From Mytilus californianus (lineage: Eukaryota), in assembly GCF_021869535.1 (NCBI RefSeq), contig NW_026262701.1:2542001-2606000 (forward strand): 64,000 bases of DNA, in the 5' to 3' direction. Under the pieces are notes generated by a model that was not told the DNA's origin, made no database searches, and was given only the letters and a program-made list of their open reading frames with translations. Below, piece by piece: positions 1 to 61,500 of this stretch (position 1 is its first letter; each line of letters starts with the position of its first letter). The position numbers were made by a program, and so were the translations under genes.

Positions 1-1000
1 AGTTAGAAATTCGGAAGTTTGTGTTATTTTCTTTGATTTTTGTTTGTGTGTGTGAATTGGTGTAAAAAAACATATGATACCCTTATTCGAGCATACGTCA
101 CTTGTTTCTGGAGTAACTTAACATTCATCAGGTACGGCAATCTCAGGACCAAAAGTTTTGATAGCTAATTAAAAGATTGAAAGCATGAAACAAGTGGTAT
201 ACCTCGAAACCCCAATTTCAAAGAAATCAATTCACATCATAGAAGCCAAGATAAATATATTTACAAAATTTGTTGTTGAAGAAAGCGGATCTGTGACATG
301 GCTTTTTATTAAAGCTTATAGAACTTACATTCGTAGGCGTTGATAAGACTTACTGTAAATATCTTATCAAACCTGAATACAAATGTTATACAAGATTTGC
401 AAATTATTCCAACGGTTTTAATGCATCTGCCTGAATGGGCGTCATAATGAAAACAAGATCGTACTTCCCAATTTAAGTTGTTAATATTGATGCACCTTAG
501 CTTGTTTGCTATGCAAATAATATAACAAAGCTTGTCATGGGATTCCATTTTAAATCAAATATCTGTATTTGGAATTGTACCATAGTGAATCTCTACATTT
601 ATGTGAGAAAAAAATGGTTAAATCTTGACCGAATTAATGAAATTTCTTTTTGATAACAGTAAAGATTACCTATTGTCTTATCCTTTATCCTACACTAACT
701 GGTTATACCAACCTATAGATTCTAACGCAAATGATATGTAGACGTCATCTCATTGATATTGCACTCTTCAGGTTTTGTTTTTAAACAAGACATTTTATTG
801 TGCCTCTAAATAAAGTTTTTATACATTTATTCCGATACAATTTTAATTAAGTTAATTGTTATATATCAAGACGATTGTGTGTGTGTGTTTTGTTTTGCTT
901 TGTGTTGTTGGTTTTTTCTTCCAAACTTTTTAATTTCTATATTTTAACTGTACTGTTTAGAATCTCCATGTTTAATATCTACTTTTTATTTGTTTGTCAG

Positions 1001-1564
1001 GATGTGATACAAAGGCAGATATAACTTTTATAGTTGACACATCAGATGATGTGGGGAAAGACAATTTTCAAAAACAGTTATCTTTTTTAAAACAAACTGT
1101 GAACAATATGAAGATAGCGCCGGACAAAACTCAAATAAGTGTTGTGACGTTTAGTTCTGGTGTTTACAACCAGTTCTTTTTAAATGCTTATGCATCAAAG
1201 GCGGATGTGCTAGCCGCGATTGACAGAATTCCTTATATTTCTGGTCGGACGCATACATCCGATGCATTAACTTACGTCACTCATACGTCATTTAACCCAA
1301 TTCACGGAGCAAGAAGCAATGTTCCTCATATCGGCGTTCTAATAACTGATGGGCCTTCAACGGCCAAGGATTTGACAAAAATTCAGGGACAAGTTGCAAA
1401 GGACAACAATATAATTATGTATGGAGTTGGAGTAGGTTCGGGAATAGATATGGACGAACTGTCCTCAGTAAGCAGCAGTCCAAGTCACAGATATATGTTA
1501 ACAGCAGAAAACTATGGTGCTTTGAATTCACTTTCAAGTTCATTGTCGACGAAGTTGTGCAATG
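1001..1564 (+). CDS. Exon 1: VWA domain 1
   Basis: tgtcag|GATGT...AATG|gtaaga; ADITFIVDTSDDVG...GRTHT...VLITDG, a typical VWA fold pattern; 564 nt, phase 1-1. Confidence 0.95.
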
Positions 1565-37500: not shown

Positions 37501-40500
37501 CATGTAGTGAAAGGTACTTCATTGAAGTCCACAAAAGTTACAATGACTGACTGTCAAAAAAAGTAAAATAACAAAAATACAGAACTCTGAGGAAAATTCA
37601 AAATGGAAAGTCTATAATCAAATGGCAAAATCAAAAGCTCAAACACATCAAATGAATTGATAACAACTGTCATATTCCTGACTTGATACAGGCATTTTCT
37701 TATGTAGAAAATAGTAGATTAAACCTGGTTTTATAGCTAGCTAAACCTCTCAATTGTCAATATAGTTGATTTTGATGCGACTGTCATACAAGTGAGAGGT
37801 TTGGCGAGCTATAAAACCAGGTTCAATCCACAATTTTCTACATAAGAAAATGCCTGTACCAAGTCAGGAATATGAGTTGATTAGGGACTTTCCTTTTTGA
37901 ATTTTCCTCGGAGTTCAGTATTTTTGTGATTTTACTTTTTTTTGTATGACAGTCCATTGACAACGATGTGTGAACAAAACAAACAGACATGATAAGTAAA
38001 AAATTCAAAAATTGAGGTACAGCTGAAGGATAACAAAAATGAAATAATCCAGGGTATATGATTTGTATTGAGTAAAAAAGAAGCTGATAACACACTGAAA
38101 TTTTTAATAAAATGTTTCCAATTCAGTGAAATTCAGTGTTAAAAATTTAAATTTGAAATACAATCTTTTAAAAATTGAAAATGAGCTGATCGTATCTTTA
38201 CCTGTTTAATACATGAATAAATCATCCTAATTATCAAGGCAAATAGTCCATGAATATATCCTTCTGGAAGAAAAGATCTTGATCTCAACTTCAATAGTAT
38301 TTTTTTAAGGGGGTAGACCTCCTGGCTAAGAGGGTGTCCACTGGAAATTATTCTAAAGAAAAATTGTACCAGAGGAAAATAATCCATAATACATCCTTCC
38401 AGAGGAAAAATCTACTGTATAGAAAAGAGGATCCAATATGGAGAAGAATAACCCATGTTATATATTTTGTTAGGAAAATAACTAAATTGATTTCAGTTGA
38501 TAGAAAAATCAAAAGGGATTTTGAATTAGCAATCTTTTATGCATAATTTATTTATGATTACAAAATTTTTTACAAACAATCGTTTGTTTATGTGCGGTAT
38601 GAGCTTTAGCTAAAAACAATTATTTTTTTGACAATTTATTTTAATTTCTGTTTACAGGTGTCCAACATATCCAATGAGTTCAGCAGATTGTAAGATGGTA
38701 TCTGATCCTAAAGATCCATGTTGTCTGGTACCACAGTGTCCATCTCCTACTGGTGCCCCTAACCAGGTTCCTACCTTGGCTCCAGGCAAGATCAGTGGAA
38801 ATATCAACATTCCAACACCAAAGCCTGGATCATCTGTATCTCCTCCTTTACTCAGTATGAACACTTATTCTAATCGTTTGTAACGTTCACATTGATTGGA
38901 TAACGTCACCAATTTTTTCATGGCAATTGATGCTATGGAAATGTACGCGCAAGCTCAGATGACGATTGACATATTTTAAATGTATGATTTGACATTGTTT
39001 TCTGTCAGTTACATTAGAATGGAGATAACGTGTCACCAGTAAACTTAAACAAATCACCAATTGATGGCGTCAGAGCTTAAAATTCAATACAGTTATCTCC
39101 TAATTGCACCTCTAAAAGAATATCGTATTCTTCTCATTCCAGACAATCCCTATAAATACATTATCTTAATTTCCCTAATAAGATATGTACAATAATTATA
39201 GATTATCAATGATTCTTCAAACGAGAGGGAGATTCTTCGCTACAATCTCATCGAAGGGTGATAGCCCTTGATGATGTAGCAGAGAAACACCCCAAGTTTG
39301 AAAGACTATGGGTAATCTGTTTATTGCTATTTTCCTAGGCAACATCAATGACATAGTATTATGATGTCATACATGTCGTACAGAAGTTCTACTGACTGAG
39401 AAAATCCAATATTATGCGAGTAGCATGATATGAAAAATTATCAACGAAAAATAAAATCCTTTATCAGGCAACACCATCTTTTTCATCAGTACATGTAATG
39501 TAGAAGCAATGAAATTGTTATCTCGGATTAAAATTTGAAATTTATTTAATTGGTATTGAAAAAAGAATAAAAGCAATATTAAAACTATCTTTCTTGCTAT
39601 TCTTAACTAGGATAAAAATTGACTTTAATTTCAGTGACAAAATCTCTTTACATGTTTTAAGTTAAATTGACATTTTCAATCTTCCAGCCTTCTGTTTGTA
39701 CAAGAGTAAACAATACAAACAAGGAGAAAAATGGATGGATGGTTGTGATTATTCTTGTGAATGTACTGATGCTTCTACTGGCAAATATGTCTGTAATGAA
39801 AGGTATATATATCTATATAATGATAGAAAGTACACATATACATGTTCAGCATTTAACACAACACTTCTTTACATTTAAAAGAGTCAGAAACCAATTAGAC
39901 AATTAAACCAGAAAAGACATCCATATATTACATACAGTCTATAACAATTGACAAATGTTTATACAATATCAGTTTTAAAATATCCTGGGATAAGGCAAGT
40001 TATGAAGAATATTTACGAAGACTATCATCAATTGGCTGATAGTTCCTGTCGATCAATTCATTTGTTCTAGAATCTGTTCCTGGTTACGGCTTTGGTTTTC
40101 AATAGTTTGCATATGTGTGAAGTTAAAACTTAGTACACATGTTTGTTATGAGGGTGAACTTTTTAGAGAATATGTCAAATTAATGTTTTGACCATGATTT
40201 TGCAGTTCATTGAACATGGAAATGTGATGGTGTAAGCAGGGCATAGTGTCCATAGTGGTGTCATATGGACAAATACTCTTGCTTCTTCATATAAATGGAC
40301 AAATAAAAATAGGGAAAGGAAAGAAAAAACAACTCAGAATTAATAAAACTTTATGAAATCTCATATCTTGTTTTTTAAACAGAATAATGACTGTATTTTC
40401 AGATGTACAAGGTATACCAATATTCCAGCTAATTGTTTCTTGGTGAAGGATGCCTCCAATCCATGTTGTAAGAAACCACAGTGTACCAACAATACACCAA

Positions 40501-43500
40501 CACCAGGGCCATATGGTTCAACTTTGTCTCCTCCCCTTAATCCTAATACACCAACACCAGCACCAAGCTTAAAAGGTGAGACCTATCACGATAACTTCTA
40601 TATTATTCACGGAAAATTTTTCAGCCTATTTTGTTCTACTGTAGATTCATTATTATTCATTGGACATTTTTCGTGGATTTCTAACATAAAGATGAACAAC
40701 AAATTCAAATGTTCTAGGTAGTACAAATCTTCTATAGGCTTGTATGCAGACTTTCGAAAAACCAAGAAATCAAGTTTTCTTGAAAGTATGATTGTTCCTG
40801 AAGCCACGAATATTGGTACCCATGAAAATAAATGAATCCACCGTATTTAACCTTGTAAAAATGAACCGCTGGGTATAAAACAGCATGCACATCAGGAAGA
40901 AAGATAACTTCATCTGAATGGAAATATCTGATGCATATCCTTAGATTCAATTTTTAGTTTACACCAATGAATATGTTTGGGATTTTAGAGCACCCTCAGT
41001 GTCCATATTCATATGAAAATACCCATTTAGGTCAACTAGAAGCTCTCATATCATATTTGCCTGCACTCATGCATATCTTCATTTGGTAGTAACGTTTCCT
41101 GTAAGACTGTGTTACCATTGAAAACAGGCAAATGCTGTATTGTTTTCTATTCATTGGCTTTGGTTGAAATTTATATCCGCAATGGCATAGTGAGATCACT
41201 TTGCAGATATTTTTTTTTGTTTTTTTCTAATTTTTATTTTTGATATATCTATATTTAGAGGTGCAGCCAACTGTCAGGTCCAGGAAAATTGTGATGAAAA
41301 AGGAAGTGGGGGGGTGGGGTATACTTGTTTACTTCCATTCCTTTGTCCGTCCATATGTTCCATGAAATTTTGGTCTGAAGCTTTACGTGAGCATGCTATA
41401 CAGCTCTGTGTGATGCATTTTCTATTTATGGAATACTTATATTTCCTTACACATTACCAGTAACACTTTTTGTCATGTTTATCTCAGGAACTACAAATAA
41501 GTGTATCTTGAAATTTAGCATTATGCTTTACATCATTCATGCTATACCATACATGTGAACCTCCCGACGGGAGTACAATAATCCCGTTTTCAGGGGTCTC
41601 CTCCCGACCTCCCGTTGAAGAGAAAAAAATCCTGTGTATGAAATTTTTCATGAATGAAAAATTTCTGCCCAACATATCATCTCAGGCATCTGGTGTAACT
41701 GACATTACCTGAAGTTATATTTTACCTGTAAATCAATTAACATGCATAATTATATGGCTTCACTTGTCAGCTTGGGTGTCAAACATACTGGTAATCAACG
41801 ATTTTTACCTCAGGCTAACTGCCGTTGTGTAATAAAAACTTTGTGTATTTATTGGGTTACTTCCCTTGATTTATCCTGTTTTAAGTTACTTTCCTTTAAA
41901 TAATGAAAATTTTTAAAAGAATATAAATAAAATATAAATTGAACAAATAATCATAAAAGGATGGTAATTAAATGATTTTAAATGTCTTAGGACAAATAAA
42001 AAAATAATAATTTGAAATTTATTTGAGGGTTCTATACTTCCTTTCAAGGCTTAAATTGAAATTTATATATTAACTATGACCCTTGTAAAATTTTCTGAGT
42101 ATGCAAAAAAAAACTCTTTACAGATAATTAAACAAATGTCCTGATTGCAATGATTGTTCTATAGAATAATGATATAAAAGATGAAGTAAAAAATTTAAAG
42201 AACATACAAAAAAAAAAAAGAATGTTAGATTGAACATGTAGAATATAAAGATAGAGAAAATTTATAAGTACAAGGGTACTATAAACATAATACATTGGAT
42301 GGAAAGTTGAAGAAAACACACTTTAAAAGACAATTTTTACAGCACACAGTGGTTACATTTACGACAAAATTTATGTCGATTAAAAACCTCCTGATCTGAG
42401 TCCTAATCTCCTGACCAAAATTTCCCAATCTCCTGATCTGAGTTTCACAGTCCATCACATGTATGCTATACTGTGTGCTTCTCTTTCAATTTTATCACTC
42501 ATCCACTTCCTGTTTACTTAATACTTATAGCTATAGCTCAGTTCAACTTGTTATAATCCATGCAAGGACTAGCTACTGTGGATTCATTTATTTTCGTGGG
42601 TACCAATTTTCGTGGATTAAGGAAAACTTGCATTTTCATGGATATTGAATTTCGTGGTTTTGCCGACGTCTGCATTCAAGCCTATAGAAAATTTGTTATT
42701 CGTTGAACATTTAATTTCGTGATTCATCTGTACCCATGAAATCCACGAAAGATGGTATCCAACGAATAATAATGAATCCACAGTATTACCTAAAGTGTGT
42801 ATACATTTTTGTTTAAGGGCCAGCTGAGGCCAGCCTGCGGGTGCACGATTTTCTCACTGTGTTGAAGACCCATTGGTGGCCTTTGGCTGTTTTCTGCTCT
42901 TTGGTCGGATTGTTGTTGCTTTTTTTTTTCCATTCACTTTTTGATATTTCAGGTAAATGTGTATACAGAGGTGTTGCTTACTCTCAGGGCCAGCAATGGT
43001 TTGATGACTGTAGTCTGAAGTGTGTATGTGAAGATGGACCTGCAGGACTCTACAGATGTAGTGAAAGGTAATCATTGCACTTTGCACAATGTTGAATAGA
43101 ATGTTTATAAAACCTAAAAAGACATACAAGGTATGCCTCGTGGGATGAGTGTTGGTTACTATCAAAGACCCTTATGTTTGCTAGGTGGAAGGCCTTTGAT
43201 TATACCAGTTCGTAGTCCATGTAGAGAAAAGCATAGCTTCCTGGTTATGTATTCTATAGTGTAGCAAGCATAGTACATTTAATTTACACTTGCAAGCACA
43301 GATAAAGCACAGATATCCTTAAAATGAAGGGAAAGCCCGAGACGGCCCAAAATATAGGTGGTGCTCCTGTCATTGGAGGGAACACAACACAGTTTTGTAC
43401 ACAAATATGGCAACATGAAACACGATCGGAAATCCATTTTATGATGTCTAACCGTTTAGATACGAGGGGGAAAATAATAATTGACACACTAGCCCTGATA

Positions 43501-46500
43501 TTTGCCAGTCTATGCGCCATTTCTGGTCAAAATGCGCAATTTGCGCATGGTACTGGACCTTCCCGATCACTGACATTGTAAATAATTAACTGTAACTTAC
43601 ACTTGCTCATAACAATATAAAAAAGGTGATAATCAGAGACAATCCTTGGTTAACATATAGGTCAAATTTTTAATGGCATCTTCATCAGAAACTTCAAGGA
43701 TAAATATTCCCAAACTTTCTATGAATGTTGACTATACATTTTAACCAGATCTTATTTATAATCAATGTTGAATGTGGGTGACACTAGCTCAGTTTCTTCA
43801 GAATCTGTAGTCGCTCGTCAGCCTACTGAAATCAAAACAAAAATTCTTCTCTTTCCTTTGCTAGTTTTATTTTGCAGTCTGTCTGCAACCCCTTATTTAT
43901 TGTCTGGCTCTACATAAATGTCCAAAAAGTTTTAAAGACTGATTGTTCAATGTTTGATACAAGTTAAGCAGGATGTTAGATTTGATGCTATGTGTGGATA
44001 ACAGAGGTTGTTTTAGGATTAAACACCTTTTTCTGAATAAAAGTCTGATTGATGTAAAGTTCTTGGACAGTGTCAAAGTTTACAAATCATTGACCTCTAC
44101 ACAAAATGTTTTTAATCCTTTTAATTCTCAACCCAAACTTTTGATTGTTTTTTCTTTCAATTTGAACTAGCTTTCTTGGAACCCAAGGATTCCATTCTTG
44201 TCTATGGCATATGAATATATTACACTGAAAACAGCATTGTTTATAGAATAAATTTCATGAACATGATCTATTGGACTAGCGTTAACTAAGGAAAATAAAT
44301 TCTAACACACCAATCACAACAAATGATTTGTTTATATGGAAATGATATCAGAATTACTATCTTTAACTATGCATGCTAATGTTTTTGTAAGATGTTTTGT
44401 GTTTAATGATTGATAGGTCGTCTTTGTTAACACTTCTATTTCATCTTTTTTTTTTTTATTCATTAAATGTATTTGATGTTTTATTTCAGAATGACAGAAA
44501 GACAATTAATGGACAAAAAACTATACATTTTAAGAAATATATATTTTTAAAAATGTTTGCCTTAGCTGAGGAGACAGTGTTATAACTAAGTCTTCACTTT
44601 ATAGGGATTGTATTTTTATAATAGCAATACTATATATAGAGTTATTTTTTATTACACAGATGTGCCAAATATACTGGACTGCCATCTACATGTACATTAA
44701 TACCAGATCCTCAAGATCCCATCTGTTGTCAGGCACCTAAATGTACATACACCAATGGTACTGGCTTTGCTACAGCACCACCTGGTGTCATTTCCGGAGG
44801 TATTGTTACACCAACACCACAACCATATCAACAGCCAACACCATACCCTGGATACACTGGACCGACCTCAGCTCCAACCGTGGCTCCAACATTTAAAGGT
44901 AAATTGTCACATCTGATTGATCTATATTTATTAGATTTTAGAATAAGCTATGCTATAATCTGAAAAAGAATAGGATAAATTAGATTTTTTATACCCCTGC
45001 TATGACTTCTGAGTGAGGATATACTAAACAACAACTTGTCAGTTTATGAAATTTTTCGTTGCATACTTCTCAGGAACTTTAATCTAGAGCTTCCTTAAAC
45101 TGTGAATCAGGCTTCCCTTAGCATGCTAATCCATATGAAACTGTGACTCAGGCTTCCCTTAGAATGCTATACCAAAAGAAACTGAATCAGGCTTCCCTTA
45201 GCATGCTATACCATATGAAACTGTGAATCAGGCTTCCCTTAGCATGCTATACCATATGAAACTGTGAATCAGGCTTCCCTTAGCATGCTATACCATATGA
45301 AACTGTGAATCAGGCTTCCCATAGCATGCTATACCATATGATGTGTTGTCACATTAGTTGCCCATTTAACTTCCTGTTTAAAAGAATACTTATATACTTG
45401 TTTTTTGCTTAATGTCCAGTGACAAACATCTTATGCATATTTAGAACAAGTAAAAATTAAGAAGAAATCCATTTTTTTACAGATGTTTGTGTGTACAAAG
45501 GAAAGCAGTATTCTCAGGACCAGAAATGGCAGGATGGTTGTGACTTTGACTGTGTTTGTCAAGATTCCAAAAAAGGATTGTACAAGTGTACAGAGAAGTA
45601 AGTAAAGCAAAAATATTGTCTTAACATAAATTATATTTACTGCATTATTCTGTGAAGGGAGTGAATAAAAGAAATAATATATGTATGTTATGTATGGTAA
45701 CGCAGTTGCTCATATTTAAATATTAATGACAAGATAGCAAAATGAGGCTATCTTTTAAGTTTTTGCTGTTTTGCACTTAAGAAGTTTGAAACCCTAATGC
45801 CAATATTTATGACAAAATTCAAAAATATAAATGTATACTGATGTCTTATGAACATTTGAAGGATGCTATTTGGTAGATTTATAATTCCTTTTTGATTTTT
45901 AAATTCAAAAGACCTTATCATACATTCTCTTTTTCAAATTTTGAATGAAAACAACTAAAAGCCTGTATTTGAATTCATGGGTTTGGTATTAATTTCATTC
46001 ATTACTTATAAATTTAACATTAGCATGGTGCAACTTGCTAACAGAAGGCATTTAAACATGAAAATAACAGTGTGACTTAGTTATAATTCTGACCAAAAGA
46101 CAAAAAAATATTCTTTTCATTGTAATATAAAATTGATGGTTTATGATGAAGCACAATGTGGTAGTACATTACATCAAATTTGTTAACACATCATCATAAT
46201 AGTGCAATTTCCTATTATAGGAACTTATAGTAGGGAACAAGTATAATTTGAATAAAAGATATTAAGCATAAAATGGACAACAATATGAGATTGATTATTG
46301 CGATTTTATGAAAAGCTGCATATAGATATATGTATCAGATATCAGAATGTGAATTCTTGATATTGCAATGCTTATCCAGTCGCATCATTGGCATATATTA
46401 CACACTTGAATTTACAGTATTATTTTGTCAAACTTTCTAGAAAAATGTTGGTCCAAGTGTAAGATAGTTTCTTTATTCATTCTGTCACCAGCATATTGTT

Positions 46501-49500
46501 TTTGATCGCTACACATCTTCCACTTTGTTAGATCAGCAGTAAGTCATTAATGACCGTACCATTTCAGATAACAACTATCATTTAACATTTTATTACCTTT
46601 TGACACTAAAAGGATTTCTATTTCTAACTAATAAATGATTTCAGGTGTCCAAAGTTTGTAGACATTCCTAAAGAATGTACACTGACCCGAGATTACCAAA
46701 ATCCTTGTTGTATGAAGGTTAAATGTCAACCATCATTGATCCCATCACCAGGACCTAATGCCTCACCAACCCCTGCTGGTAAGATACTACAGATTTTATT
46801 CTTATGGTGAAGGATTTCCGGTATCACAGGAATTAGTAGGCATAATTTGATCAGATTTACTACAAAGAAAAAAACTTGAAGCACCTTGTGGATAATTGAA
46901 TATATCATGTTAGTGGAAAAGTCCTCGCAATGTACAAAATCTCTCAAGTTAAAATTAGAAATGGAAAGGTTCTAATGATGATATTGATAAAATAAGATAT
47001 CAGAAAGTGGTAAGATAATCAAATAAGCTAAACAGTATGCCCCTGATTAATGTTTTCTTCAACAGAGAAAAAATATAAATACTTAAAATCAAGTCATAAA
47101 AACTAAGTAAGCTGCAAATTCTTAGTCAGAAGCATATGGTTCTTTGATTCATATAGGCAACACTTTTATAGCTGACTATGCGGTATGGGCTTTGCTGATT
47201 GTTGAAGGCCGTACATGCAGTGACCTATATTTGTTAATTTCTGTGTCATTTGGTCTCTTCTGAAGAGTTGTCTCAATGGCAATCATCCCACATCTAATTT
47301 TTATAACTCAATTGCAAGTCCACTACACACAAGAAATAAGGGGGAAAAAAGTCCATTTCACAAATTTGTTGGAGGCAAAATCATTCTATTAAAATTGACT
47401 TGAGCGGGTAGAAAGGGACTTTAAAATTTCTTTGAAAACCAGCATACTGTGAATAATACTGCATAAATTATAAGAACTTACAACTATAAATGACTTTTGA
47501 TACATGTCCTAAAATAAAACTTCTATTCCCACTTCTCAAATTCATTTTTACTGGAAAAGCCTTCAACATGTGTGAAAACAAAATTAAAATTTACAAATGA
47601 AGACTATGCTATTTTATATTATTTTTTTCAGCATTAAATTATCAGCAGTGTAAATAAATTTTGTTTATAAGTTATTTACAGTATAGAAAAATATGTAATG
47701 AGAGATATGTAATTTTGTTTAAAGGTCAATGTATGTATAATGGTGTACCATTTAACGAAGGACAGACATGGAATGATGGATGTGATCTAAGATGTTCCTG
47801 TGAGAATGGCACCACAGGGTATTACAGATGCAGTGATAGGTATGTAGTTTGGTGGAACTAAATGCATGTGTACCCTTTTTATGCTTTTGAATTATGGTTA
47901 CTTCACAAACTAATTTTAGCATGTTGTATAAAATGTCATTTGCCTAAATCCCACTCTTGGTCACAATAAATACTATAACAAAACAGGACAGATAAGAATG
48001 TTTTTCTATTATTTCATTTATAAAGATGATATACATGTATCAGGGTTTTTTAATGTTCTAATTTACATAACTTACAAAAAATTAAGAGAATTGAAGAGCT
48101 AAGAAGTAAATACAAAGCAAATCCAATCAAAATATTTCTTTAAGGTGGTACTTAACACTACAGGGAGATAACTCTGTAAAAATCAGTTGAACGTTTTAAT
48201 CACATTCTATTTTTAAGAAAATGTAAAGCTTCTCAATGATCAAAATAAGTGTTTGTCAAACTGCTATATATCCAATGTAATTTTTCCGATAAAGTGTGTG
48301 GTTCAAGTATTTTGAAATTTTCATATTTTGTTCAAAGGTCAAATTAAATATTTTGTCAAAATTTTATGAAAATTAAACGAGCCAAATTAATTTTAGTCAA
48401 GGTGTTTGGTACAACCTTAAATGAGTGAATATATTATGTTTTAGATGTGCTAAGTATCCAAATATTCCAAGCTACTGCACAATGGAGACTGATCCAAATG
48501 ATCAGTGCTGTATGAAACCAAGGTGTCAACCAGCACCTGCTACAACAGTTATACCTACAATATCACCATATCTTACACCAGGACCAGGTGTGACTTACCC
48601 ACCAAACAAGGTACCAACTCAGTATCCAGGTCAAACATTTGCACCTGGGAAAGCACCAACACTTGAACCATTCAAACCATACCCACCTGGACTTCAGCCA
48701 ACTATGTCACCTTTATTGACACCAGGTCCTGGTTATACCTATCCACCAGGAAAAGTACCAACACAATATCCAGGACAAACATTTCTACCAGGCAAAGCAC
48801 CAACATTGGCACCATATAAACCATTCCCACCAGATCTGCAACCAACAGCATCACCATTTCTAACACCTGGCCCAGGCTACACTTATCCTCCAGGAAAAGT
48901 CCCAACTCAGTATCCTGGACAAACATTCAAACCAGGAAAGGAACCTACATTGTCACCCAACAAACCTTTCCCTCCAGATTTGTTACCAACAATGTCACCA
49001 TATTTGACACCAGGAGTAGGTTACACATATCCACCCGGTAGAGTCCCAACTCAGTATCCAGGACAAACTTTCCCTCCAGGAAAAGAGCCAACATTATCTC
49101 CATACAAACCGTTCCCACCAAATTTGAGACCAACAATGTCACCTTATAGAACTCCAGGTCCAGGATATACATACCCACCTGGGAAAGTTCCACCTACCAG
49201 TTTCCCTGGAGAGATACCAACTTTGTCACCATTCAAACCATTCCCACCAGATCTTCTGCCGACTTTAGCTCCTTATTTGACACCAGGACCAGGCTACACT
49301 TATCCACCAGGAAAAGTACCACCAACCAGTTATCCTGGAGAAATTCCAACTCTTCCTCCATACAAACCATTCCCAAAAGGACTAGAACCAACATTGTCAC
49401 CGTACCTAACACCAGGACCAGGCTATACATATCCACCAGGCAGAGTTCCAACTCAATATCCAGGACAGACCTTTCAACCTGGGAAGGAACCAACTCTGGC

Positions 49501-52500
49501 TCCAAACAAGCCTTTCCCTCCTGGACTGATGCCTACAATGGGACCTTATAGAACACCAGGACCAGGCTACACCTATCCCCCAGGAAAAGTACCACCTACA
49601 AGTTTCCCTGGTGAAATTCCAACTCTGTCACCATATCAAACATTCCCACCAGATCTTTTGCCAACACAGTCACCATACTTAACACCTGGACCAGGTTACA
49701 CCTACCCACGAGGGAAAGTACCAACAGAGTATCCAGGGCAGACATTTGCCCCAGGAAAGGAACCAACTCTTGCTCCAAACAAACCATTTCCACCAGGACT
49801 TGGACCAACTTTGTCACCATACCTCACTCCAGGACCAGGCTACACATACCCCCCAGGTAGGTACACATATCTACTTACTTTGTTCCTTTATGGCCCAGCT
49901 TAGGTAAAGGGAAAAACTAACAAAGCATTCCCACCAGGACTTTGACCAATTTATCACCATACCTGACTCCAGGACCAGGGTACACATACCCAACAGGTAG
50001 GTACACATATCTACTTACATTGTACCTTCATGACCTGGCTTAGGTAAAAGGAAAAACAAACAAAGAAAAAAGAAAGTGGGGGTAATTTCAGTCATCTGAC
50101 AATTAGAATGTACAATTCACTATTTACCAACAAATAAACAAAAGATATATCAAAAGTAAAGAATTTTGTAAATGGCAGCATATGATGAAGATATATCATG
50201 CAATAATATCATGCTTAACTTTAAATAAATGTATTTTCAGGGAGAGTACCAACACAGTACCCAGGACAAACCTTCCAACCAGGGAAAGAACCAACTCTGT
50301 CACCATATAAACCTTTCCCACCAAATCTTCTACCAACAATGGGGCCATATTTGACACCAGGACCCGGATACACATATCCACCTGGAAAGGTTCCACCAAC
50401 CAGTTACCCTGGAGAGATACCAACTTTATCACCTTACAAACCATTCCCACCTGACCTCATGCCAACACAGGCACCTTACATTACACCAGGACCAGGGTAT
50501 ACCTACCCACCAGGAAAAGTGCCAACACAGTATCCAGGTCAAACATATAAACCAGGGCATGCACCAACATTAGCACCTAATAAACCTTTTCCACCAGATT
50601 TGTTGCCAACACAGGCACCATATTTGACACCTGGCTATGGCTACACATATCCTCAGGGTTATAAGATACCTACACAGTTTCCAGGACAGACTTTCCCTCC
50701 AGGACAGATACCTACATTAGAACCAAATAAACCATTTCCGCCAGGACTTGGACCAACTCTATCACCTTATTTAACACCAGGACCAGGATATACTTATCCT
50801 TCTGGACAGGTACCTCCAACCAGGTATCCTGGAGAAATACCAACACTAGCACCATATAAGCCATTCCCACCAGGACTGGGTCCAACGATTTCTCCATATC
50901 TGACACCAGGACCAGGGTATACATATCCACTTGGAAAAGTACCAACACAATATCCTGGACAGACCTTCCAACCAGGAAAGGAACCAACATTGCCACCATA
51001 TAAACCATTTCCTACAGGATTATTGCCAACATTGTCACCATTATTAACCCCTGGACCAGATTACACATATCCACCAGGGAAAGTGCCAACACAGTATCCT
51101 GGACAGACATTTGCTCCAGGGAAGGAACCAACATTATCACCATATCAGACATTCCCTCCTGGTCTCAGGCCAACAATGTCTCCATATCTAACACCAGGGC
51201 CAGGAGTTACCTATCCACCAGGAAAAGTACCAACTCAATACCCAGGACAGACATACCAACCTGGCAAGGAACCAACATTGGTACCTAATCTTCCATATCC
51301 TAGCTATTTGTTACCAACAAGAAGTCCATATCGAACACCAGGACCAGGCTACACTTACCCACCAGGAAAAGTTCCACCAACCAAATTCCCAGGAGAGATT
51401 CCGACACTGTCACCATACAAACCTTTCCCAACAGATTTGTTGCCAACAGCTTCACCATACTTGACACCAGGACCAGGCTACACATACCCACCTGGGAAAG
51501 TTCCACCAACCAGTTTCCCTGGAGAGATACCAACTTTGTCACCATTCAAACCATTCCCACCAGATCTTCTGCCAACAGTTGCACCGTATCTGACACCAGG
51601 CCCAGGCTACACTTATCCCCCTGGTAAAGTCCCAACTCAGTATCCAGGCCAAACATTCCAACCTGGGAAAGAACCAACTTTATCCCCTGACAAGCCTTTT
51701 CCTCCAGGTCTTCTGCCAACAGTTAGACCATATTTCACTCCAGGACCAGGCTACACATACCCACCAGGGAAGGTTCCAACTCAGTATCCAGGCCAAACAT
51801 TTGCTCCAGGAAAGGAACCAACTCTTGCTCCAAACAAACCATTTCCACCAGGACTTGGACCTACTTTGTCACCATACCTCACACCAGGACCAGGCTACAC
51901 ATACCCACCAGGAAAAGTTCCACCAACCAGATTCCCAGGAGAGATACCAACATTATCACCATACAAACCTTTCCCACCAGATTTGTTGCCAACAGCTTCA
52001 CCATACTTGACACCAGGACCAGGCTACACTTATCCTAAAGGAAAAGTCCCAACACAGTATCCTGGACAAACATTCCAACCAGGAAAGGAACCTACACTCC
52101 AACCGGACAAACCATTTCCTCCAGATCTACTACCAACAGTAGCTCCATACTTTACACCAGGACCGGGCTACACCTACCCTCCAGGAAAAGTACCAACTCA
52201 ATATCCAGGCCAGACATTTGCACCTGGGAAAGCACCAACCCTGCCACCTTGGAATCCATTCCCTCCAGGATTAGGACCAACTCTGTCACCTTATCTTACA
52301 CCAGGACCAGGCTATACATACCCACCAGGAAAGGTTCCACCAACAAAATTCCCAGGAGAGATACCTACACTGTCACCTTACAAACCATTCCCACCAGATC
52401 TGTTACCAACAAAAGCACCCTATTTGACTCCAGGACCAGGGTACACATATCCTAAAGGAAAAGTACCACCAACCAGTTTTCCAGGAGAGATACCAACACT

Positions 52501-55500
52501 AGCACCTTATGAGACTTTTCCACCAGATTTATTACCAACAATCAGGCCTTATTTCACACCAGGACTAGGTTACACATATCCACAAGGAAAAGTACCACCA
52601 ACAAGTTTCCCTGGAGAAATTCCAACATTAGCTCCATACAAACCATTCCCACCAGGACTTGGACCAACTTTGTCTCCATACCTGACTCCTGGACCTGGCT
52701 ACACGTACCCACCAGGAAAGGTCCCACCAACACAGTATCCAGGACAGATTCCTACACTGTCACCATACAAACCATTCCCACCAGGATTAATTCCAACAGC
52801 TTCACCATACCTTACACCTGGACCAGGAGTAACATATCCTCCAGGGAAAGTACCAACACAGTATCCAGGTCAAACATATCCACCAGGACTGGCACCAACA
52901 CTGGCACCTAACAAACCATATCCCCCAGGTCTTTTACCAACACTATCACCATACTTGACACCAGGACCAGGATACACATATCCTCCAGGCAGAGTACCAA
53001 CACAATACCCAGGACAAACTTTCCTTCCAGGAAAAGCACCAACTCTGTCACCATATCAAACTTTCCCACCAGGTCTCCAACCAACATTGTCACCTTATCT
53101 AACCCCAGGACCAGGTTACACATACCCACCAGGAAAAGTTCCACCAACCAATTTCCCTGGAGAGATTCCAACATTGCCACCATATCAACCATTCCCACCA
53201 GATTTGATACCAACTGTCTCCCCTTATAGAACACCAGGACCAGGTTACACTTACCCACCAGGCAAAGTACCACCAACTAGTTATCCAGGAGAAATACCAA
53301 CACTGTCTCCCTACAAACCATTCCCATTGGATCTGTATCCAACAGCATCACCATATCTGACACCAGGACCAGGCTATACATACCCGCCAGGAAAGGTCCC
53401 ACCGACACAATATCCAGGACAGATTCCAACACTGTCTCCATTCAAACCCTTCCCACCAGGTCTGATACCAACTGCCTCACCTTATAGAACACCAGGACCA
53501 GGTTACACTTACCCACCAGGCAAAGTACCACCAACTAGTTATCCAGGAGAAATACCAACACTGTCTCCAAACAAACCATTCCCACCAGATTTATTTCCAA
53601 CCCTTGGTCCTTATGCAACACCAGGACCAGGCTATACCTACCCACCAGGAAAAGTACCACCAACAACTTTCCCAGGAGAGATTCCAACCTTGTCTCCATA
53701 CAAAACATTCCCACCAGATCTCAAGCCTACATTGTCACCATATAGAACACCAGGGCCAGGCTACACGTATCCTCCAGGAAAGGTCCCAACACAATATCCA
53801 GGACAGACTTACCAACCTGGAAAGGAGCCAACTTTGTCACCATACAAACCTTTCCCAACAGACTTGTTGCCAACTATATCACCGTATCTGACACCAGGAC
53901 CAGGTTACACATATCCACTTGGGAAAGTACCAACACAATATCCTGGACAGACATTCCCACCAGGAAAAGAACCAACATTGTCACCATATAAACCATTCCC
54001 ACCTGATCTTCTGCCAACATTAGGTCCATATTTGACTCCAGGACCAGGCTACACTTACCCACCAAATAAGGTACCAACTCAGTATCCAGGTCAAACGTTT
54101 GCACCTGGGAAGGCACCAACATTGTCCCCATACCTTCCCTTCCCACCAGGATTGAGACCAACACCTGGACCAACGAATGCTCCAACCAAGAAGCCTTATT
54201 TAATACCTACGGCCATACCTGGTATCATCACTGGCCAAGGTGTTGGAGTAAACGGAAGTAGGTATTTTAAAAAAGATAATTGGTAATACACAAAATTAAT
54301 TCTGGATAATTTTTAAGTTATTCCATTAGATAATCATGTGATATTATTTTCATCAGGTAATCACACAGAGGAAATCTTGTAATAACATATTCTAATTTAA
54401 TTTTATGGAACAGTTTTTTATATTGGTTAAGATTTACCTTCACAGTTGACATGACTTAGCTAAAAAGTGAGCCACCATATTGAATTGCTTTGATCAACAA
54501 ATGTTTAATTACTACAATATAATCAAAAATAAAACAACACTATCCTCAAAAACAGTATTAAGATGTAATTTAATCCAAATTTGAATAGTAGAAGTAATGT
54601 AATAAACCTTCAGTTTGGTAGTTTTCATTTGTGTGACATCATGTTTGGCCATGACGTTTATGTGCCAAAATCATTCATGAAATTTTGCAGAATTTTATTT
54701 TATTTCAAAAAAAAATTTCTCAAGCTCTAACTTATTATTTTTTGTTGTAATGCATTAGAATCGGAATAACAGTACTGTGGTTGAAGAATTGCCACCATCT
54801 ATTTGGATTTGATGGTCACAAATATCCATTTTACTGACTCCCCTACACATCGCCAGTAAAACTGCATTTGCAACCATTAAATCACCAATTGACGGAGGCA
54901 ACTCTTCGACTACAGTTTTTCCTTAAGTTACGATTTATAGCAGTGTTTTAAATACTGGATGTCTATCTGTCTAGTTTGGTAAGTGCTATCACACATTTCA
55001 ATTCTTGCCATATTTTAGGGAATTTATATGAAAGGAAATATCAGCAATGCTCAGACAAGTTGTAAAATAAGTGCTTAACCATTTTATGCCGCTTGGAAAT
55101 ATTGATTATATGGAAAGATGTATAAGCGCTCTTAAGGGTACATTTCTTGTAGGTTTTTTAGTGAAAGTTGATAATCAAAGGTTTATATCAGCAATATCTC
55201 GATAAATTTGAAAATCAGATTTGATCAATTATTTTTACAGGAGTTATACCCCTTAGAAATAGAAATTTAATGTAAATTTGCATTGTTAAAGATAGGCGAA
55301 AGATACCAAATGAACATTCAAACTCGTTAGTCAAAAATAAACTGACAATGCCATGCCAAAAAACTAAAAAATGATCAAAAGACATTTAGACAAACAACAG
55401 GAAATCATCTAAGCATCTAATTTCATTTAGGATATTTATGGAAATATATTTCACATGATGTTAATACTGTTGATATACTTTTCTTCAAGGGTATCAATTT

Positions 55501-58500
55501 TCCTGGTTTGTGAAAATATTGTCGGTTAACAGTGTTTTAAATTTTTTGTTTTATGATTTACACATTCAAATTCAATGGGAAATATAAATTTAAAAATCTA
55601 GATAAATTGGTACCCCACATATAATCCAGTCAAATTTATAAGTTTTTAGCTTCATGATGGAATTGAGTTATAGGTTACTTTTACTTCATGAAATTGTGAA
55701 ACTATCAAAGAATTTTGAAAGTTTTATTTTTTATTGGGAGAAAATCTTTGAATTGCAAATTTTAGGAAGAGAATGGGAAATAAGGTGTATGAAAATCCAA
55801 TTTCAAGTGGTCCAAAGTCCAAAGACACTGGGAATAATTATAACATCAAACAATAGACCAAATAGATAATGTCGCCTATTCTCATGGTGAAGGCCCTAAT
55901 GTCACCTATTATCATGGTAAAGGCCCTAATGTCACCTATTCTCATGGTAAAGACCCTAATGTCACCTATTCTCATGGTAAAGACGGTAAAGACCCTAATG
56001 TCACCCATTCTCATGGTAAAGACCCTCATGTCACCTATTGTCATGGTAAAGACCCCAATGTCACCTATTATCATGGTAAAGACCCTGATATCACCTATTG
56101 TCATGGTAAAGACCCTAATGTCACCTATTCTCATTGTAAAGACCCTTTTTAGATTATAAAAAGTGATGTTTCACTGCTATGTAATTATATATGTAATTTA
56201 TTGACATGTTTTTCAGAGTCGTGTATGTACAAAGGTGTATCCTATAAGAAGGGAGATAAATGGGAAGATGGATGTCAGTACAAATGTGAATGTATGGATG
56301 ATATGACTGGCAGCTATCAATGCAAAGAAAGGTAACATTTCTGTCTAGTTATAGTCCACACCGTATTTAGTTACTTCCACGTTAATGATGTGCAGTTTGA
56401 ATAGAATTGACGAATCCTTTCTATAATATGATCATACATTGTGCAGACATTTTATTTTTAAATAGTTTGAAATTATAGTCATTTCAAAATATTTTGTTTT
56501 TTATACCCCAGCCTTAAAAAAGTGGGGGTATACTGTTTTACCTCAGTCTGTCCTTCTGTCCATCCATCCCTCCGTCAGTCCGTCCATCCGTCCCATGAAT
56601 ATTTTTCATCGCATTTTTCTCAGAAACTACAATACAAGGATTTCTGAAATTTGGTTTCAGGGTTTATATAAGTTGGCTATACCGTATGATGCATTTTTAG
56701 ATTCATCACTCAACAACTTCCTGAATGAAATATTTGGGTGGTGGTATCATCAGTGAGCAGTAGCTTGCAGTTTCACTTGTTTTTAGTGTGTATGTTTGTT
56801 TTATTTTATGGGATGGAGCTATAGGTTGGGTATAATAAATGTTTTGTGTGTTAAGGCTAGTTCTCTATATGAATAAAGGATATATTACCTCAGAATTGTA
56901 CATAGACACTGATACAACCTTCTGGGGTTTCACAGCGAATGACAAGTTTTTGGCCTCTTGTACTTTCAACATCACCCTTTAAATGGCTTTTGATTAAAAA
57001 AAGAATAAAACACATAAAAAGTCTGTAATGTAAAAACAGTCCTAAGAATAAGATAAAACACATAATTTCCTCCTTTAGGTGAAAAGTCTTACAAATGAAC
57101 TAGCCATTCCTCTCTCAAAATTTGCATATTTTATTAAAGATATAGACCGATTGTTGTTTGCTTTCTTACAAACTTATATGGCAGTAGATACACAATCTAC
57201 CTTAACCCCATATTTGTTAATATTTTATATATAAAAATAAGTAGATGTATGATTGCCAATGAGACATTAACTATCCACTAGAGACCAAATGACTAGGATT
57301 TTAACAACTATAACCAATATTTGACATGCCTTGATAGATTAGTAACACCTGAAGTTGATATAATCAAATCAATGAATATTATCCATAAATGTCCTTTTAA
57401 TGACATTTAGTGTAAAGGGTGTCGGGCTTTTAAAATTGTAAAAGGAACAACAGCACAAAATGCTTAATGAACATCTCATTAATTTTATATTTAAAGTATT
57501 AATATAAACAGTACCATTTTTACTTCACCAGATGCATATTTAGTCAATGTCTCTTCAGTGATGTTGAGTCAATAAAGAGTCATGACAGTTGTATACGCTG
57601 TTCAATAGTCATAATTCGATTAAGCAAAAACATTGGATAATCCAAAACCTAATTCAAGCATTGAAAAGTCAACGAGTGATTTTAAATATGCAATAATATT
57701 ATTTGAAAGATATTGATTCCTTTGAAAAATAAGTTGTTAGTTAACTGTTAGAAATAAAAGACAAATTTGACTGTAAAGTCAGTCTTCAAAAGTGAAAGAA
57801 TTGGTACACATGTATTGTGAAATTAAAAGGCCTATTTATCAAAAACATCAGAAAATCTATATAGTTTTGTTTTATATTAATGTGCCACCTATTTGTTAGT
57901 ATGAATGTGATTTTGAATCTGCATGTACTTTAAATAGAACAAATCAGCATTTAATTCAATAGTCAATTTAAGTAATTCACCACAATGATACATGCATTCT
58001 GTATTACAGGTGTCCAACCTACACAGATATACCAGCCAGCTGTCGACTCACCATTGATCCTAAAGATTCATGTTGTATGGTTCCTTCCTGTGCACAGCCC
58101 ACACCAACACCTGCACCATATTTAGGTCCTAGTACACAAATACCTCCCGTTACAGGTGAGTACTCAGCCATGCTGGACTGACATTAACACTTGCACCATA
58201 TCTAGGTCCTACTACGCAAATACCTCTGATACTGAGCCAACACTGATATATACCTAGGTCTCATTACCCTAATATCTATCTTGACAATTGAGCCACTAGA
58301 TATCTCAAGTTGTAGTTGATTACATACCTACATTGAGCTGTCACCACTTTAAATTTGCACAATATCAAGGTCCTAAGTACTCTGATACCTCTCTATAGAT
58401 TACTCAGCTGCATAAAAAGTTGCAACATATATATATTTTTTTTTTCTAAGCACTTTATATATATATATACAGATATTACTTTTTGAATTATTTCTAGTTG

Positions 58501-61500
58501 TGAATAATAAGAAAATACAAGTTTTAAATTCAACATGGAAAACACAATAGGTGATAACATACTGTGGATTCATTATTATTCGTTGGATACCAATTTTCGT
58601 TGGTTTCGTGGGTACAGGTGAACCACGAAATCAAATGTTCAACGAATATCATATTTTCAATACGCTTTGTATACAGAGATTGGCAATCCACAGTAGATGC
58701 TAACGGTAATTGTGAAGAATTTTGGATCAAAGTTATTGTTTTGATTAACTGTCTACTTGTTACATATTTTCGTTCATTACCCATTCGGAACAAGTCACTG
58801 TTAAGACATCATTTTGAAGCTTCATTTTTGTTATAACTTTGTAACAATATGCACTTGAGTCATTCAAATTATTAATTTCTTCTGGTTTCTCGGGGACTAT
58901 CTATAGTAAAAAGTGATCTATTCATCTCTTATTTAATTCCTAATAATGAATGAACACACAAGTCTTACAATGTCTGATGAAACAATTTAATTTCTGCAGT
59001 ATGGAAAGAAAACTTTGACAATGAAATTGGAAACCAGAACTTTATGCTTTTTGCAAATATTGTAAACAAGACTTCAATTCAGTGTGATGGTTGGTGTTCC
59101 GGTCCTCAGGTGCTCATCAACTTTGAATGGTAGTCTTCATAAACAAAGGAAGTCATTGATTTGTAACTGTGTGCATAGTTGTTAGTATGATTTTTATAAA
59201 ATTTTATGAAAAAAAATATTATTACTGAAAAAAATCTCAAATTACGGAAATCTTGATACTTTTTAACTGATTGCAGGAGGTTGGCATCTAACAGTATTTT
59301 GATTTTACACTTGTAGCCAAACCTGACATCAATGCTTGTTTATACAAGGGTAATGTGTACACCCAGGGACAGAAATGGTACGATGACTGTGACAAAGTAT
59401 GTGTATGTCAAGATGCCAAAATGGGATTTTATAGCTGTCAAGACAGGTAAAATTTTATGTTTTTTTTTTTTTTTTATGTTTTAAAAACTAAAATCTGTAT
59501 TGTAGCAATTTACTGTGTGTCCAAATAATGAATCTCTAAAAACATTTGAGGTTATTCGAATGTACATCATATATATGGTAAGTAAAATTATCATCCTTTA
59601 CCACAGACAAAAAACAACTGATCTGCAAGATTTACCATCACTTGCCGCTATACATCATGTACTGTGTTACAACCTTAGATAAAGCCGACAAAGAAAGGCA
59701 TTACTTGACTAATGAAAGCTATATTTTTATATAGCCTAGTTGGTCTAGTGGTCTATGGAATGAACATAGTGCAAGCGGTGTTGCCACGATGTGTCCGATG
59801 CAGTGATTTGAATCCCTCTGAGGATGACTGCCAATGAGACAAATTTCCAACAGAGACCAACCAACATAACTATTGTTCCATATAGTTTTTCAAAAAGGTC
59901 AAAAACCACACCATATAGCAAGCAATAAAAGACCCTGACATGGAAAATGTAAAACAATTTGAACCTTCACTTGACAAAAATTCATCTGGACTTTACAAAA
60001 AGCGCTGTATAGCTAGCTTTTATTAAGTTATGGATACATTTAGCAAGGACTATTTAATATATGCAATTGAAAGATGTATACAGAGATGATCACATATAAG
60101 GTTCGTAACATGGGGCATCCAAATCAAAATGGTGAGCTGTAACTTGTATTTTATGCTCCTGTTGCTAAGCAAAGGGGGCATTAAGTGTTACCCTTGACAG
60201 TGGGATTTGGGCAGTTAGTAACTTACCGTTCAAGAGTTATCTTGCTCCTTTATAACTTGCAAAATTACAATTTTTCCTTATCCAAATTTTATGAAACTCA
60301 CACAATGCTTAGAACCAAAACTTGCAGACAGAATTGGAACTTGGTAGTGAGTTATCTTGTTAAGTACTTTTTTCAAGAAATTATTAACTCACAAATTTTT
60401 AAAGTTTTTTAAAAAGAACAAACAAAAACAGGCAGCCTTGACCTTAGATAGCATTTACATTTAAATGTCACTTTTGTCGGCCTCAAATATGAGAAAACAG
60501 TACTTATCTTGTTTATATATATTTCAGATGTGCCAAGTACTCTAACCTAGGCCCTAACTGTGTGATGGTACCTGATAGTAGAGACCCACAATGTTGCCAA
60601 GCTCCTGACTGCAACAACAAAAATACAACAAATATCCAAGGTGTACAGGGAACCATAACTGGTACTGGTACTCTGCCTCCACCCACTGTTGTGCCTGGTA
60701 AACCAACAATAGCTCCAAAGGGTAAGTCTATTGTATAAAGGCAACCCTGTACTGATACAATGTTTCATTTAAATATTGTAGCTGAAAAGGGGAGGTCATT
60801 ATCAAAGGTCCGGTTACTTGTATTTTAATTTTCATTAATGATGCTTTTCTACCTAGTAAACAATTTGAAGCTTAACATTAAATATGATACTAAGAAAATG
60901 TGGTATGATTGTCAATGAGACAACTTTCCACTAGATACCAAATGACACAAATTAACAACTATGGGTCATTGTATGGCCTTCAACAATGAGCAAAATCCAT
61001 ACCACATAGTCAGTTTGAAACAGCACCGAAATGACAAATGTCAAATAATTCAAATGAGAAAACTAACAACCTGCTTAATTTACAAAACAATGAGTGAAAA
61101 AGAAATATGAAATACAGCAACAAACAACAACCAATGAATTATAGGCTCTTGACTAGGGGCAGGTACATGCAGAATGGAGTGGGGTTAAACATGATACAGT
61201 TCTCTTTCATGACAGGACTGTAGCTTTTGTTTTGATAACCACAATTTATAAAGAATTAGAACCATCCTACTTTGTGTATAAGTCTATTTGTAACACATAA
61301 TCATGATAATATTTCAATTCAGAATTCACCACAACATTCATGTTATATAGTTTGTATAAGAATTCATTATTATTTTGGTTAGTTTATTCTATATTTGACA
61401 CCTAAAGTCAATTTCAACATTTCAGTCGATATTTGTGGTGATATATCCCTAATATTTGACTGTTGTTGTCAACTTTTATAAAATTCTATGTCAGGTTACC

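Follow-up and report, generated by a model that had tools for sequence, protein, structure and literature searches.

Mucins carry their proline/threonine/serine (PTS) domains as long Pro/Thr-rich tandem repeats in very large exons, and such domains reach a Ser+Thr content of roughly 25–40% or more. The mussel foot protein 1 (mfp-1, or Mcfp-1), a byssal cuticle protein made in the foot glands and rich in hydroxyproline and 3,4-dihydroxyphenylalanine (DOPA), is a stand-alone protein built on a decapeptide of the A-K-P-S-Y-P-P-T-Y-K type, with about 20% Lys and about 20% Tyr/DOPA. Plant extensins combine Ser-Hyp4 (Hyp, hydroxyproline) with Y-x-Y motifs that are joined as isodityrosine, elastin, resilin, high-molecular-weight (HMW) glutenin and the PEVK region of titin are high in Pro+Gly, and kielin/chordin-like protein and CRIM1 hold many ten-Cys VWC domains with Pro/Thr-rich linkers. 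Here we describe an array of 38 tandem units rich in Pro, Thr, Gly and Tyr in Mytilus californianus, which lies in a stretch of 64,000 nucleotides (nt) of contig NW_026262701.1 (positions 2,542,001 to 2,606,000, forward strand), hereafter the window. The array forms a giant linker, transcribed, under selection, basic and studded with Tyr, within a matrix gene of VWA/ShK/VWC build. On its sequence it would be classed among the Pro/Thr-rich tandem-repeat spacers of Cys-rich modular matrix proteins, and it is notable for its size, the conservation of its units and its Tyr patterning.

Units of the array and their exons

When the translation is cut at each TPG(P)G, taken as the unit start, 38 tandem units are resolved on the + strand between 48575 and 54178. 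Twenty units have 48 amino acids (aa), the last unit counted, 17 have 43 aa and one has 49 aa; the order from unit 1 to unit 38 (L long, s short) is LLLLssLsLLsLLsLLLssLLsLLssssLLsssssLLL. The two types are separated by a single segment, which reads 'VPTQYPGQTFxPGKEPTL' in the 48-aa type and 'VPPTSFPGEIPTL' in the 43-aa type. An earlier note, made from the letters of the window, had described a Cys-free Pro/Thr/Gly/Tyr repeat of 38 units with GYTY in most of them, and this description is correct in all essentials: 38 units were parsed, Cys is absent and GYTY is found in 34 of the 38. Its 48-residue consensus captures one unit type, which does exist, and leaves out the second, 43-aa type with 'VPPTSFPGEIPTL' (17 units). 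The composition of units 1–37 is P 29.8%, T 12.6%, G 11.3%, Y 9.6%, L 8.3% and K 5.2%, and the repeat part as a whole comprises 1,733 residues, about 185 kDa, with an isoelectric point (pI) of 9.4; all 38 copies together amount to some 1,780 residues. At the DNA level, the array shows periods of 129 and 144 nt in Tandem Repeats Finder, together with higher-order periods of 258, 273, 288 and 417–420 nt. Frame 1 of the + strand is open over 48425–49903 and 50225–54286, and the segment at 48–54 kb stands out by its GC content (0.42–0.47 vs about 0.30–0.35 for the AT-rich window) and by a strong C-over-G and A-over-T skew.

The repeat had been taken to lie on one exon; it occupies two, exon A and exon B, and a GT..AG intron of 384 nt divides unit 10. 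The features are as follows, with a slash at each splice site.

47725..47839, + strand: upstream 115-nt exon, first half of a VWC domain (CMYNG...YYRCSD-R); acceptor ...aaag/GT, donor GATAG/GTATGT
48445-49856, + strand: exon A; acceptor tttag/A, donor CCAG/GTAGGT
48445..48529, + strand: start of exon A, second half of the upstream VWC domain (CAKYPNIPSYC...DPNDQCCMKPRC); acceptor tttag/A
48575..49856, + strand: units 1-9 and the first 10 codons and one base of unit 10 (exon A), covered by RNA contigs
49857..50240, + strand: phase-1 intron of 384 nt inside unit 10; RNA joint, zero depth in bin 49992-50190
50241-54257, + strand: exon B; acceptor ttttcag/GG, donor GGAA/GTAGGT
50241..54178, + strand: remainder of unit 10 and units 11-38 (exon B), RNA contigs over all bins
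54179..54257, + strand: non-repeat tail of exon B (PTPGPTNAPTKKPYLIPTAIPGIITGQGVGVNG-), ending at donor GGAA/GTAGGT
56217..56331, + strand: downstream 115-nt exon, first half of the next VWC domain (SCMYKGVSYKKGDKWEDGC...); Pfam VWC, loose-end consensus match

In the transcript contigs of X11 (RNA on record) and X1, 29 of the 30 bins of 48400–54350 have coverage, the sole empty bin being the intron. In both sets the splice joint was placed at 49853>50238 ('GT..AG, cut +3'), which is equivalent to 49856>50241. Upstream, the exon at 47725–47839 (a Pfam VWC match to profile positions 1–32) is joined onto exon A, as the loose end of an RNA contig at 48442 equals the last 30 nt of that exon; downstream, the loose end at 54257 continues with 30 nt that open the exon at 56217. 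Skipping of the repeat in the main transcript had been raised as a concern, and in the contigs seen exons A and B are both spliced into the mRNA between two VWC first-half exons. Contig depth over the array is 350–1800 in X1, and array expression is therefore high in this sample. Among the raw reads of run X21 (n = 24), the first mate lies on the minus strand in 24 of 24, which fits + strand RNA in a stranded library. Short array fragments searched against contig collections returned only metagenome contigs and the M. edulis genome, which carry no tissue information.

A local duplication was observed at the boundary of exon A. At 49776–50065, the last ~98 nt of the exon and the first ~45 nt of the intron are duplicated in tandem within the intron (140-nt period, 2.1 copies, 88% match), the GTAGGT donor included. 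The degenerate second copy (49901–50000) contains an in-frame stop, and its donor is unused in the RNA contigs seen.

Age and constraint of the array

We calculated the ratio of nonsynonymous to synonymous substitution rates (dN/dS) by pairwise Nei–Gojobori comparison among units of the same length. The 48-aa type gives a dN of 0.16 and a dS of 1.28, and the 43-aa type a dN of 0.12 and a dS of 1.04, so that dN/dS is about 0.12 in both unit types, with 98–99% of pairs below 0.5. A ratio near 1 among units, which the earlier note had named as refuting its reading, is not seen. Identity between units at the first, second and third codon positions is 0.84, 0.86 and 0.52 in the 48-aa type and 0.86, 0.91 and 0.57 in the 43-aa type. 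The impression that silent sites vary between units while amino acids are kept is thereby borne out, the third position being 0.52–0.57 identical vs 0.84–0.91 at the first two. A pair of units differs on average by 9.4 amino acids, vs 23.1 when equal numbers of nucleotide changes are placed randomly. Silent sites between units are near saturation, which makes the array old, and DNA identity between units ranges from 62 to 95%, which means that no very recent duplication has taken place.

The X1 and X11 contigs are colinear with the window, with about 1.5% differences and no indel reported. Of 40 listed differences to near-identical transcript contigs, 32 are synonymous and 8 non-synonymous, and several of the 8 restore a consensus Pro. 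These data bear on the notion that the array is a neutral, unstable minisatellite in a chance open frame, or a mis-assembled repeat. Repeats this large are easily mis-assembled and readily change in copy number, and several true non-coding minisatellites do lie in introns of the host gene; however, the dN/dS of 0.12 at a dS above 1, the codon-position pattern, the age and distinctness of the units, and the colinear, indel-free contigs from independent samples refute this explanation, and we regard it as hardly credible. Taken together, the units show an old and stable array that purifying selection constrains as protein.

The host gene and its relatives

The whole + strand of the window is taken up by one gene, whose upstream domains are listed below.

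976..63256, + strand: host gene within the window, running past the window end
976-1572 and 3873-4496, + strand: VWA domains (Pfam E 1e-41 and 1e-44)
6094-6249, 6791-6970 and 22021-22188, + strand: ShK-like domains

Downstream of the VWA and ShK domains come the VWC domains, each made of a 115-nt first-half exon and a second-half exon that extends into a short Pro/Thr-rich linker. More than 20 such split VWC domains are present. Their halves continue beyond the window to at least C121:2637753 in assembly coordinates, and the gene is therefore longer than 95 kb; its last exon was not located within the window or in C121:2606001-2646000. Single first halves score 18–21 bits against PF00093 (cut-off 27.6), only half of the domain being present, and the ten-Cys pattern (C-x-x-C-x-C and C-C-x-x-C) is complete on reading both half-exons together; the pattern at 48445–48529 matches about 20 other second-half exons of the gene. 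Intact VWC domains of the relatives P0009, P0010 and P0019 pass the cut-off. No VWD or CHRD domain was seen in the host gene. From the domain types and a membrane-anchored paralogue, described below, we infer that the host protein is secreted.

Unit-like motifs recur in other inter-VWC linkers of the gene, including PTPAPYLGPST, PTAAPYLGPST, PIPTLAPN, FTGQTFVPIP and PYPGYTGPT. Because these linkers share motifs with the unit, the 38-unit array is, as judged from sequence, one inter-VWC linker that has been enormously amplified.

Tandem duplication was also observed in other introns of the gene. A 51-nt minisatellite at 15544–17290 (34 copies, 91% match, G-over-C skew 0.38) lies in the intron after a VWC first-half exon; it is open in several frames on both strands and is probably non-coding. 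At 18899–19389, a 70-nt unit is repeated seven times, each copy beginning with GTATGT right after a VWC second-half exon, and consists of splice-donor and exon-end copies. The stretches at 23991–24163 and 26237–26524 consist of 55-nt tandem copies of a VWC first-half exon end with its donor (…CTCENAVYGYYRCTDM / GTAAG), and form strings of pseudo-exon ends within the intron. A 30-nt minisatellite at 55867–56146 (9 copies, 85% match) lies in the intron that separates exon B from the following VWC exon.

When exon B was used as query in a word search, the one protein returned was Mytilus galloprovincialis LOC143080960 (P0001/P0004), whose cluster includes M. edulis members. From its N-terminus, LOC143080960 consists of a signal peptide, about 11 units of the array kind, degenerate units, a 20-aa short repeat, one VWC domain, a transmembrane (TM) helix and a 50-aa tail, and P0001 shares the tail motif of exon B. 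In the present assembly its counterpart occupies C121:2494742-2515282, at a distance of 27 kb upstream of the window, and is a membrane-tethered version of the repeat with a short cytoplasmic tail. A third locus was noted at C121:2087411-2094619, where the array unit recurs at 40–65% identity with many stops; it is likely a decayed copy or heavily split by introns.

An exhaustive HMMER search with exon A against 1.84 billion representatives gave 42 matches, two of them at <1e-30. The named matches are from M. galloprovincialis and M. coruscus (the paralogue family) and from Tegillarca granosa. The T. granosa protein KUTeg_018905 (P0009) is a VWC/ShK protein that starts with a shorter, Tyr-containing 'APGQTYAPGxIPT' repeat in a position comparable to that of the array. 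The Tyr-bearing Pro/Thr linkers of this gene family are either older than Mytilus or arose twice. Only the VWC-plus-linker part is matched by very large, uncharacterised proteins from Gigantopelta, Lingula, Aplysia and Batillaria, and likewise by the auto-named Lingula 'mucin-19' and Pomacea 'mucin-2-like'. The apparent match to a bacterial VCBS protein (P0013) was judged compositional and was rejected as a relative.

In architecture, the host gene resembles kielin/chordin-like protein, CRIM1 and the lophotrochozoan VWA/VWC giants (Lingula LOC106173996, Gigantopelta LOC121389349 and Tegillarca KUTeg_018905, all uncharacterised), which have many ten-Cys VWC domains with Pro/Thr-rich linkers, and the TM paralogue, like CRIM1, has VWC beside a single TM helix. 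None of these proteins, however, has a 43/48-aa unit or an equally long array, and as far as the databases searched reach, the unit appears confined to Mytilus. A Pfam search of both exons gave no family for the repeat at E<=1. Look-alikes in the ESM atlas scored 0.80 at best, below the useful range; the third match, a fragment of a viral mucin-like glycoprotein G, is a lead only. No peptide motif of the unit was found in the text of the 8.4 million papers searched, and the repeat and its host gene are labelled only 'uncharacterized', in line with the proposal that the repeat is undescribed. Nor did the literature searched contain tissue or proteome reports for the gene from byssus, shell, periostracum, mucus, crystalline style or digestive gland. 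The one lead comes from another mytilid, whose digestive gland is enriched for the Pfam terms VWC and ShK (PMC5549309), an enrichment that is not specific to the host gene.

A probable extended spacer, with cross-linking and elasticity as rivals

To model the array, four units were submitted to AlphaFold2 with an alignment of 31 paralogous four-unit windows. The prediction has a mean pLDDT (predicted local distance difference test) of 40, a pTM (predicted template modelling score) of 0.20 and no regular secondary structure; the array, having no predicted fold, is read as disordered on this model. It holds 174 Pro-Gly, 47 Pro-Pro-Gly and 34 Gly-Pro-Gly, and five or six Pro-Gly dipeptides are kept per unit. 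T-P-x-P occurs at 35 sites, the Thr of which is invariant, and Pro stands at -1, +1 or +3 of 258 of the 276 Ser/Thr; XTPXP is quoted as a mucin-type consensus (PMC4123919). The array has no N-glycosylation sequon.

With moderate confidence, we hold that the array serves as an extended spacer or elastic tether, whose T-P-x-P sites are probably O-glycosylated and whose Pro may be hydroxylated. Such a spacer would be long and unfolded, rich in polyproline-II and beta-turn conformations, and could separate the disulfide-rich binding modules on either side by as much as several hundred nanometres while lending a secreted matrix or gel hydration and elasticity. The invariant T-P-x-P of each unit would offer a good context for mucin-type O-glycosylation, and the Pro-Gly dipeptides would form turns and provide possible prolyl-hydroxylase sites. 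Evenly spaced aromatics may act as weak 'stickers' for self-association, and each unit would keep a net positive charge. Covalent cross-linking through Tyr may come on top, yet it is not required by the evidence. The earlier note had offered two interpretations, an adhesive or sclerotising 'rod' and an O-glycosylated spacer. Context favours the latter, a spacer, over the rod, because the array is an expanded linker between VWC modules, because array-type units form the outer part of the membrane-anchored paralogue and because AlphaFold2 predicts no fold.

Several points weigh against this reading. Ser+Thr make up 15.9% of the array, much less than in typical mucin domains, and conservation among the units far exceeds that of most mucin repeats. 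Low pLDDT is no proof of disorder. The 5' end of the host gene and its signal peptide were looked for and not located, and the raw-read RNA run X22 has no reads at all on the array region and hence provides no test. No VWD domain lies near the gene: the nearest same-contig match of a PF00094 search of the whole assembly, which scores the best candidates only and could miss a weak copy, is at 26.1 Mb vs 2.54–2.64 Mb for the gene (C8, TIL and CTCK were not searched for). Within the limits of this best-candidate search, the lack of a nearby VWD rules out a gel-forming mucin of the vertebrate type.

The comparison with mucins in the wider sense, secreted, membrane-tethered or the nematode Tc-MUC with its ShK/SXC flanks, is correspondingly mixed. 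Like a PTS domain, the array is a long Pro/Thr-rich tandem repeat in very large exons (here 1.4 and 4.0 kb). It is also predicted to be unfolded, is flanked by Cys-rich VWC/ShK domains, has a membrane-tethered paralogue with the repeat outermost, contains T-P-x-P and has relatives auto-named as mucins. Unlike a PTS domain, it has only 16% Ser+Thr, which falls short of the composition of that class, with 10% Tyr and 4% Phe, and its long units (43/48 aa) show strong conservation (dN/dS 0.12).

The main idea of the earlier note was a different chemistry, the cross-linking of Tyr. Aromatics make up 13.8% of the array, spaced 7.2 residues apart on average with no gap above 18, and the array has 36 Y-x-Y motifs, whose Tyr8 is invariant in the 37 column-tabulated units and whose Tyr6 is kept in 34 of 37. 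As a substrate of tyrosinase or peroxidase, the array could have its Tyr, above all in Y-x-Y, converted to DOPA or to di- or isodityrosine, which would harden or glue byssus, periostracum or gastric shield and would be compatible with a spacer role. In addition to the conserved Y-x-Y, the Tyr content of 9.6% and the basic pI fit such cross-linking, as do the resemblance of 'YPPGK' to the hydroxylated 'YPPTYK' of mfp-1 and the very high contig depth in some runs, as expected for structural secretion. Mytilus does make DOPA proteins, and byssal peroxidase-like proteins have been named (PMC6641155). However, only 32 of the 167 Tyr have a Lys or Arg within two residues, and several other aromatic columns exchange Phe and Tyr freely (e.g. 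F16/Y4, F17/Y3 and F10/Y7), which suggests that the exchanged columns keep aromaticity rather than Tyr chemistry. The VWA/ShK/VWC context also speaks against cross-linking as the main role. The mussel DOPA proteins described so far are small or built of simple repeats, and none is known to carry a VWA/ShK/VWC array. A membrane-anchored paralogue led by array-type units would be an odd place for glue, and the lack of tissue or proteome reports in the literature searched counts on the same side. Taken together, we consider Tyr cross-linking an unlikely main function.

The array is not a member of either of the Tyr-rich repeat families described above. It resembles mfp-1, from the same genus, in being a basic, Cys-free and unfolded Pro/Tyr/Thr/Lys tandem repeat with a Tyr-Pro-Pro motif. 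It differs in its period of 43/48 aa, its 5% Lys and 10% Tyr and its place within a VWA/ShK/VWC giant; Tandem Repeats Finder gives no 30-nt (decapeptide) period in the array, and neither Pfam nor the word search nor the exhaustive HMMER search detected sequence similarity to mfp-1. With plant extensins it shares a Pro-rich, extended and basic repeat with recurring Y-x-Y. However, kingdom and cross-linking enzymes differ, the likeness comes down to one tripeptide, no Ser-Pro-Pro-Pro-Pro block occurs in the units and Pfam gives no extensin match at E<=1.

A further possibility is an elastomeric or phase-separating domain, that is, an entropic spring or coacervating block in which glycosylation is not the main feature. 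A 2P+G of roughly 0.6, which reportedly goes back to Rauscher et al. in 2006, is said to mark the boundary for elastomeric, non-amyloid proteins. At 0.71 the array lies above this value, and its pLDDT of 40 fits disorder; the likeness is compositional only and implies no membership by descent. The abundant Pro-Gly and Gly-Pro-Gly, the regular aromatic spacing and the missing fold point the same way, and hydrophobic and aromatic columns are conserved beyond the need of a pure spacer. As in elastin, resilin, HMW glutenin and titin PEVK, Pro+Gly is high, Pro-Gly turns are many and no fold is predicted; as in resilin, Tyr is on hand for dityrosine; and the 'PGQ' and 'GY.YP' motifs recall glutenin repeats. 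Against this, the likeness to elastin, resilin and glutenin is one of composition, no sequence relationship was found by Pfam or among the ESM-atlas look-alikes (none above 0.80), and the array is high in Thr and has less Gly than elastin or resilin. We therefore hold an elastomer in this sense to be rather improbable. Quite doubtful, too, is a bolder proposal that combines both chemistries, in which the unit would be a new mussel structural module: a basic, aromatic-patterned Pro/Gly/Thr block that coacervates and is then Tyr-locked at Y-x-Y through DOPA or dityrosine, making a giant cross-linkable elastomer on a VWC/VWA scaffold. Candidate sites may be byssus, periostracum, gastric shield and crystalline style. 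Returning to the extended spacer, by analogy the array would work most like a mucin PTS domain or an elastomeric spacer.

Mytilus is a reference organism for protein-based wet adhesives and tough coatings. At this locus a short inter-domain linker was amplified to a domain larger than most proteins and then placed under strong purifying selection, which is unusual for a low-complexity spacer and implies that the precise unit is important. With RNA contigs supporting its junctions, the gene model provides a concrete target for proteomics. If glycosylated, the unit would define a Tyr-rich, Thr-poor variant of a mucin; if cross-linked or elastomeric, it would be a new building block for mussel-inspired materials.

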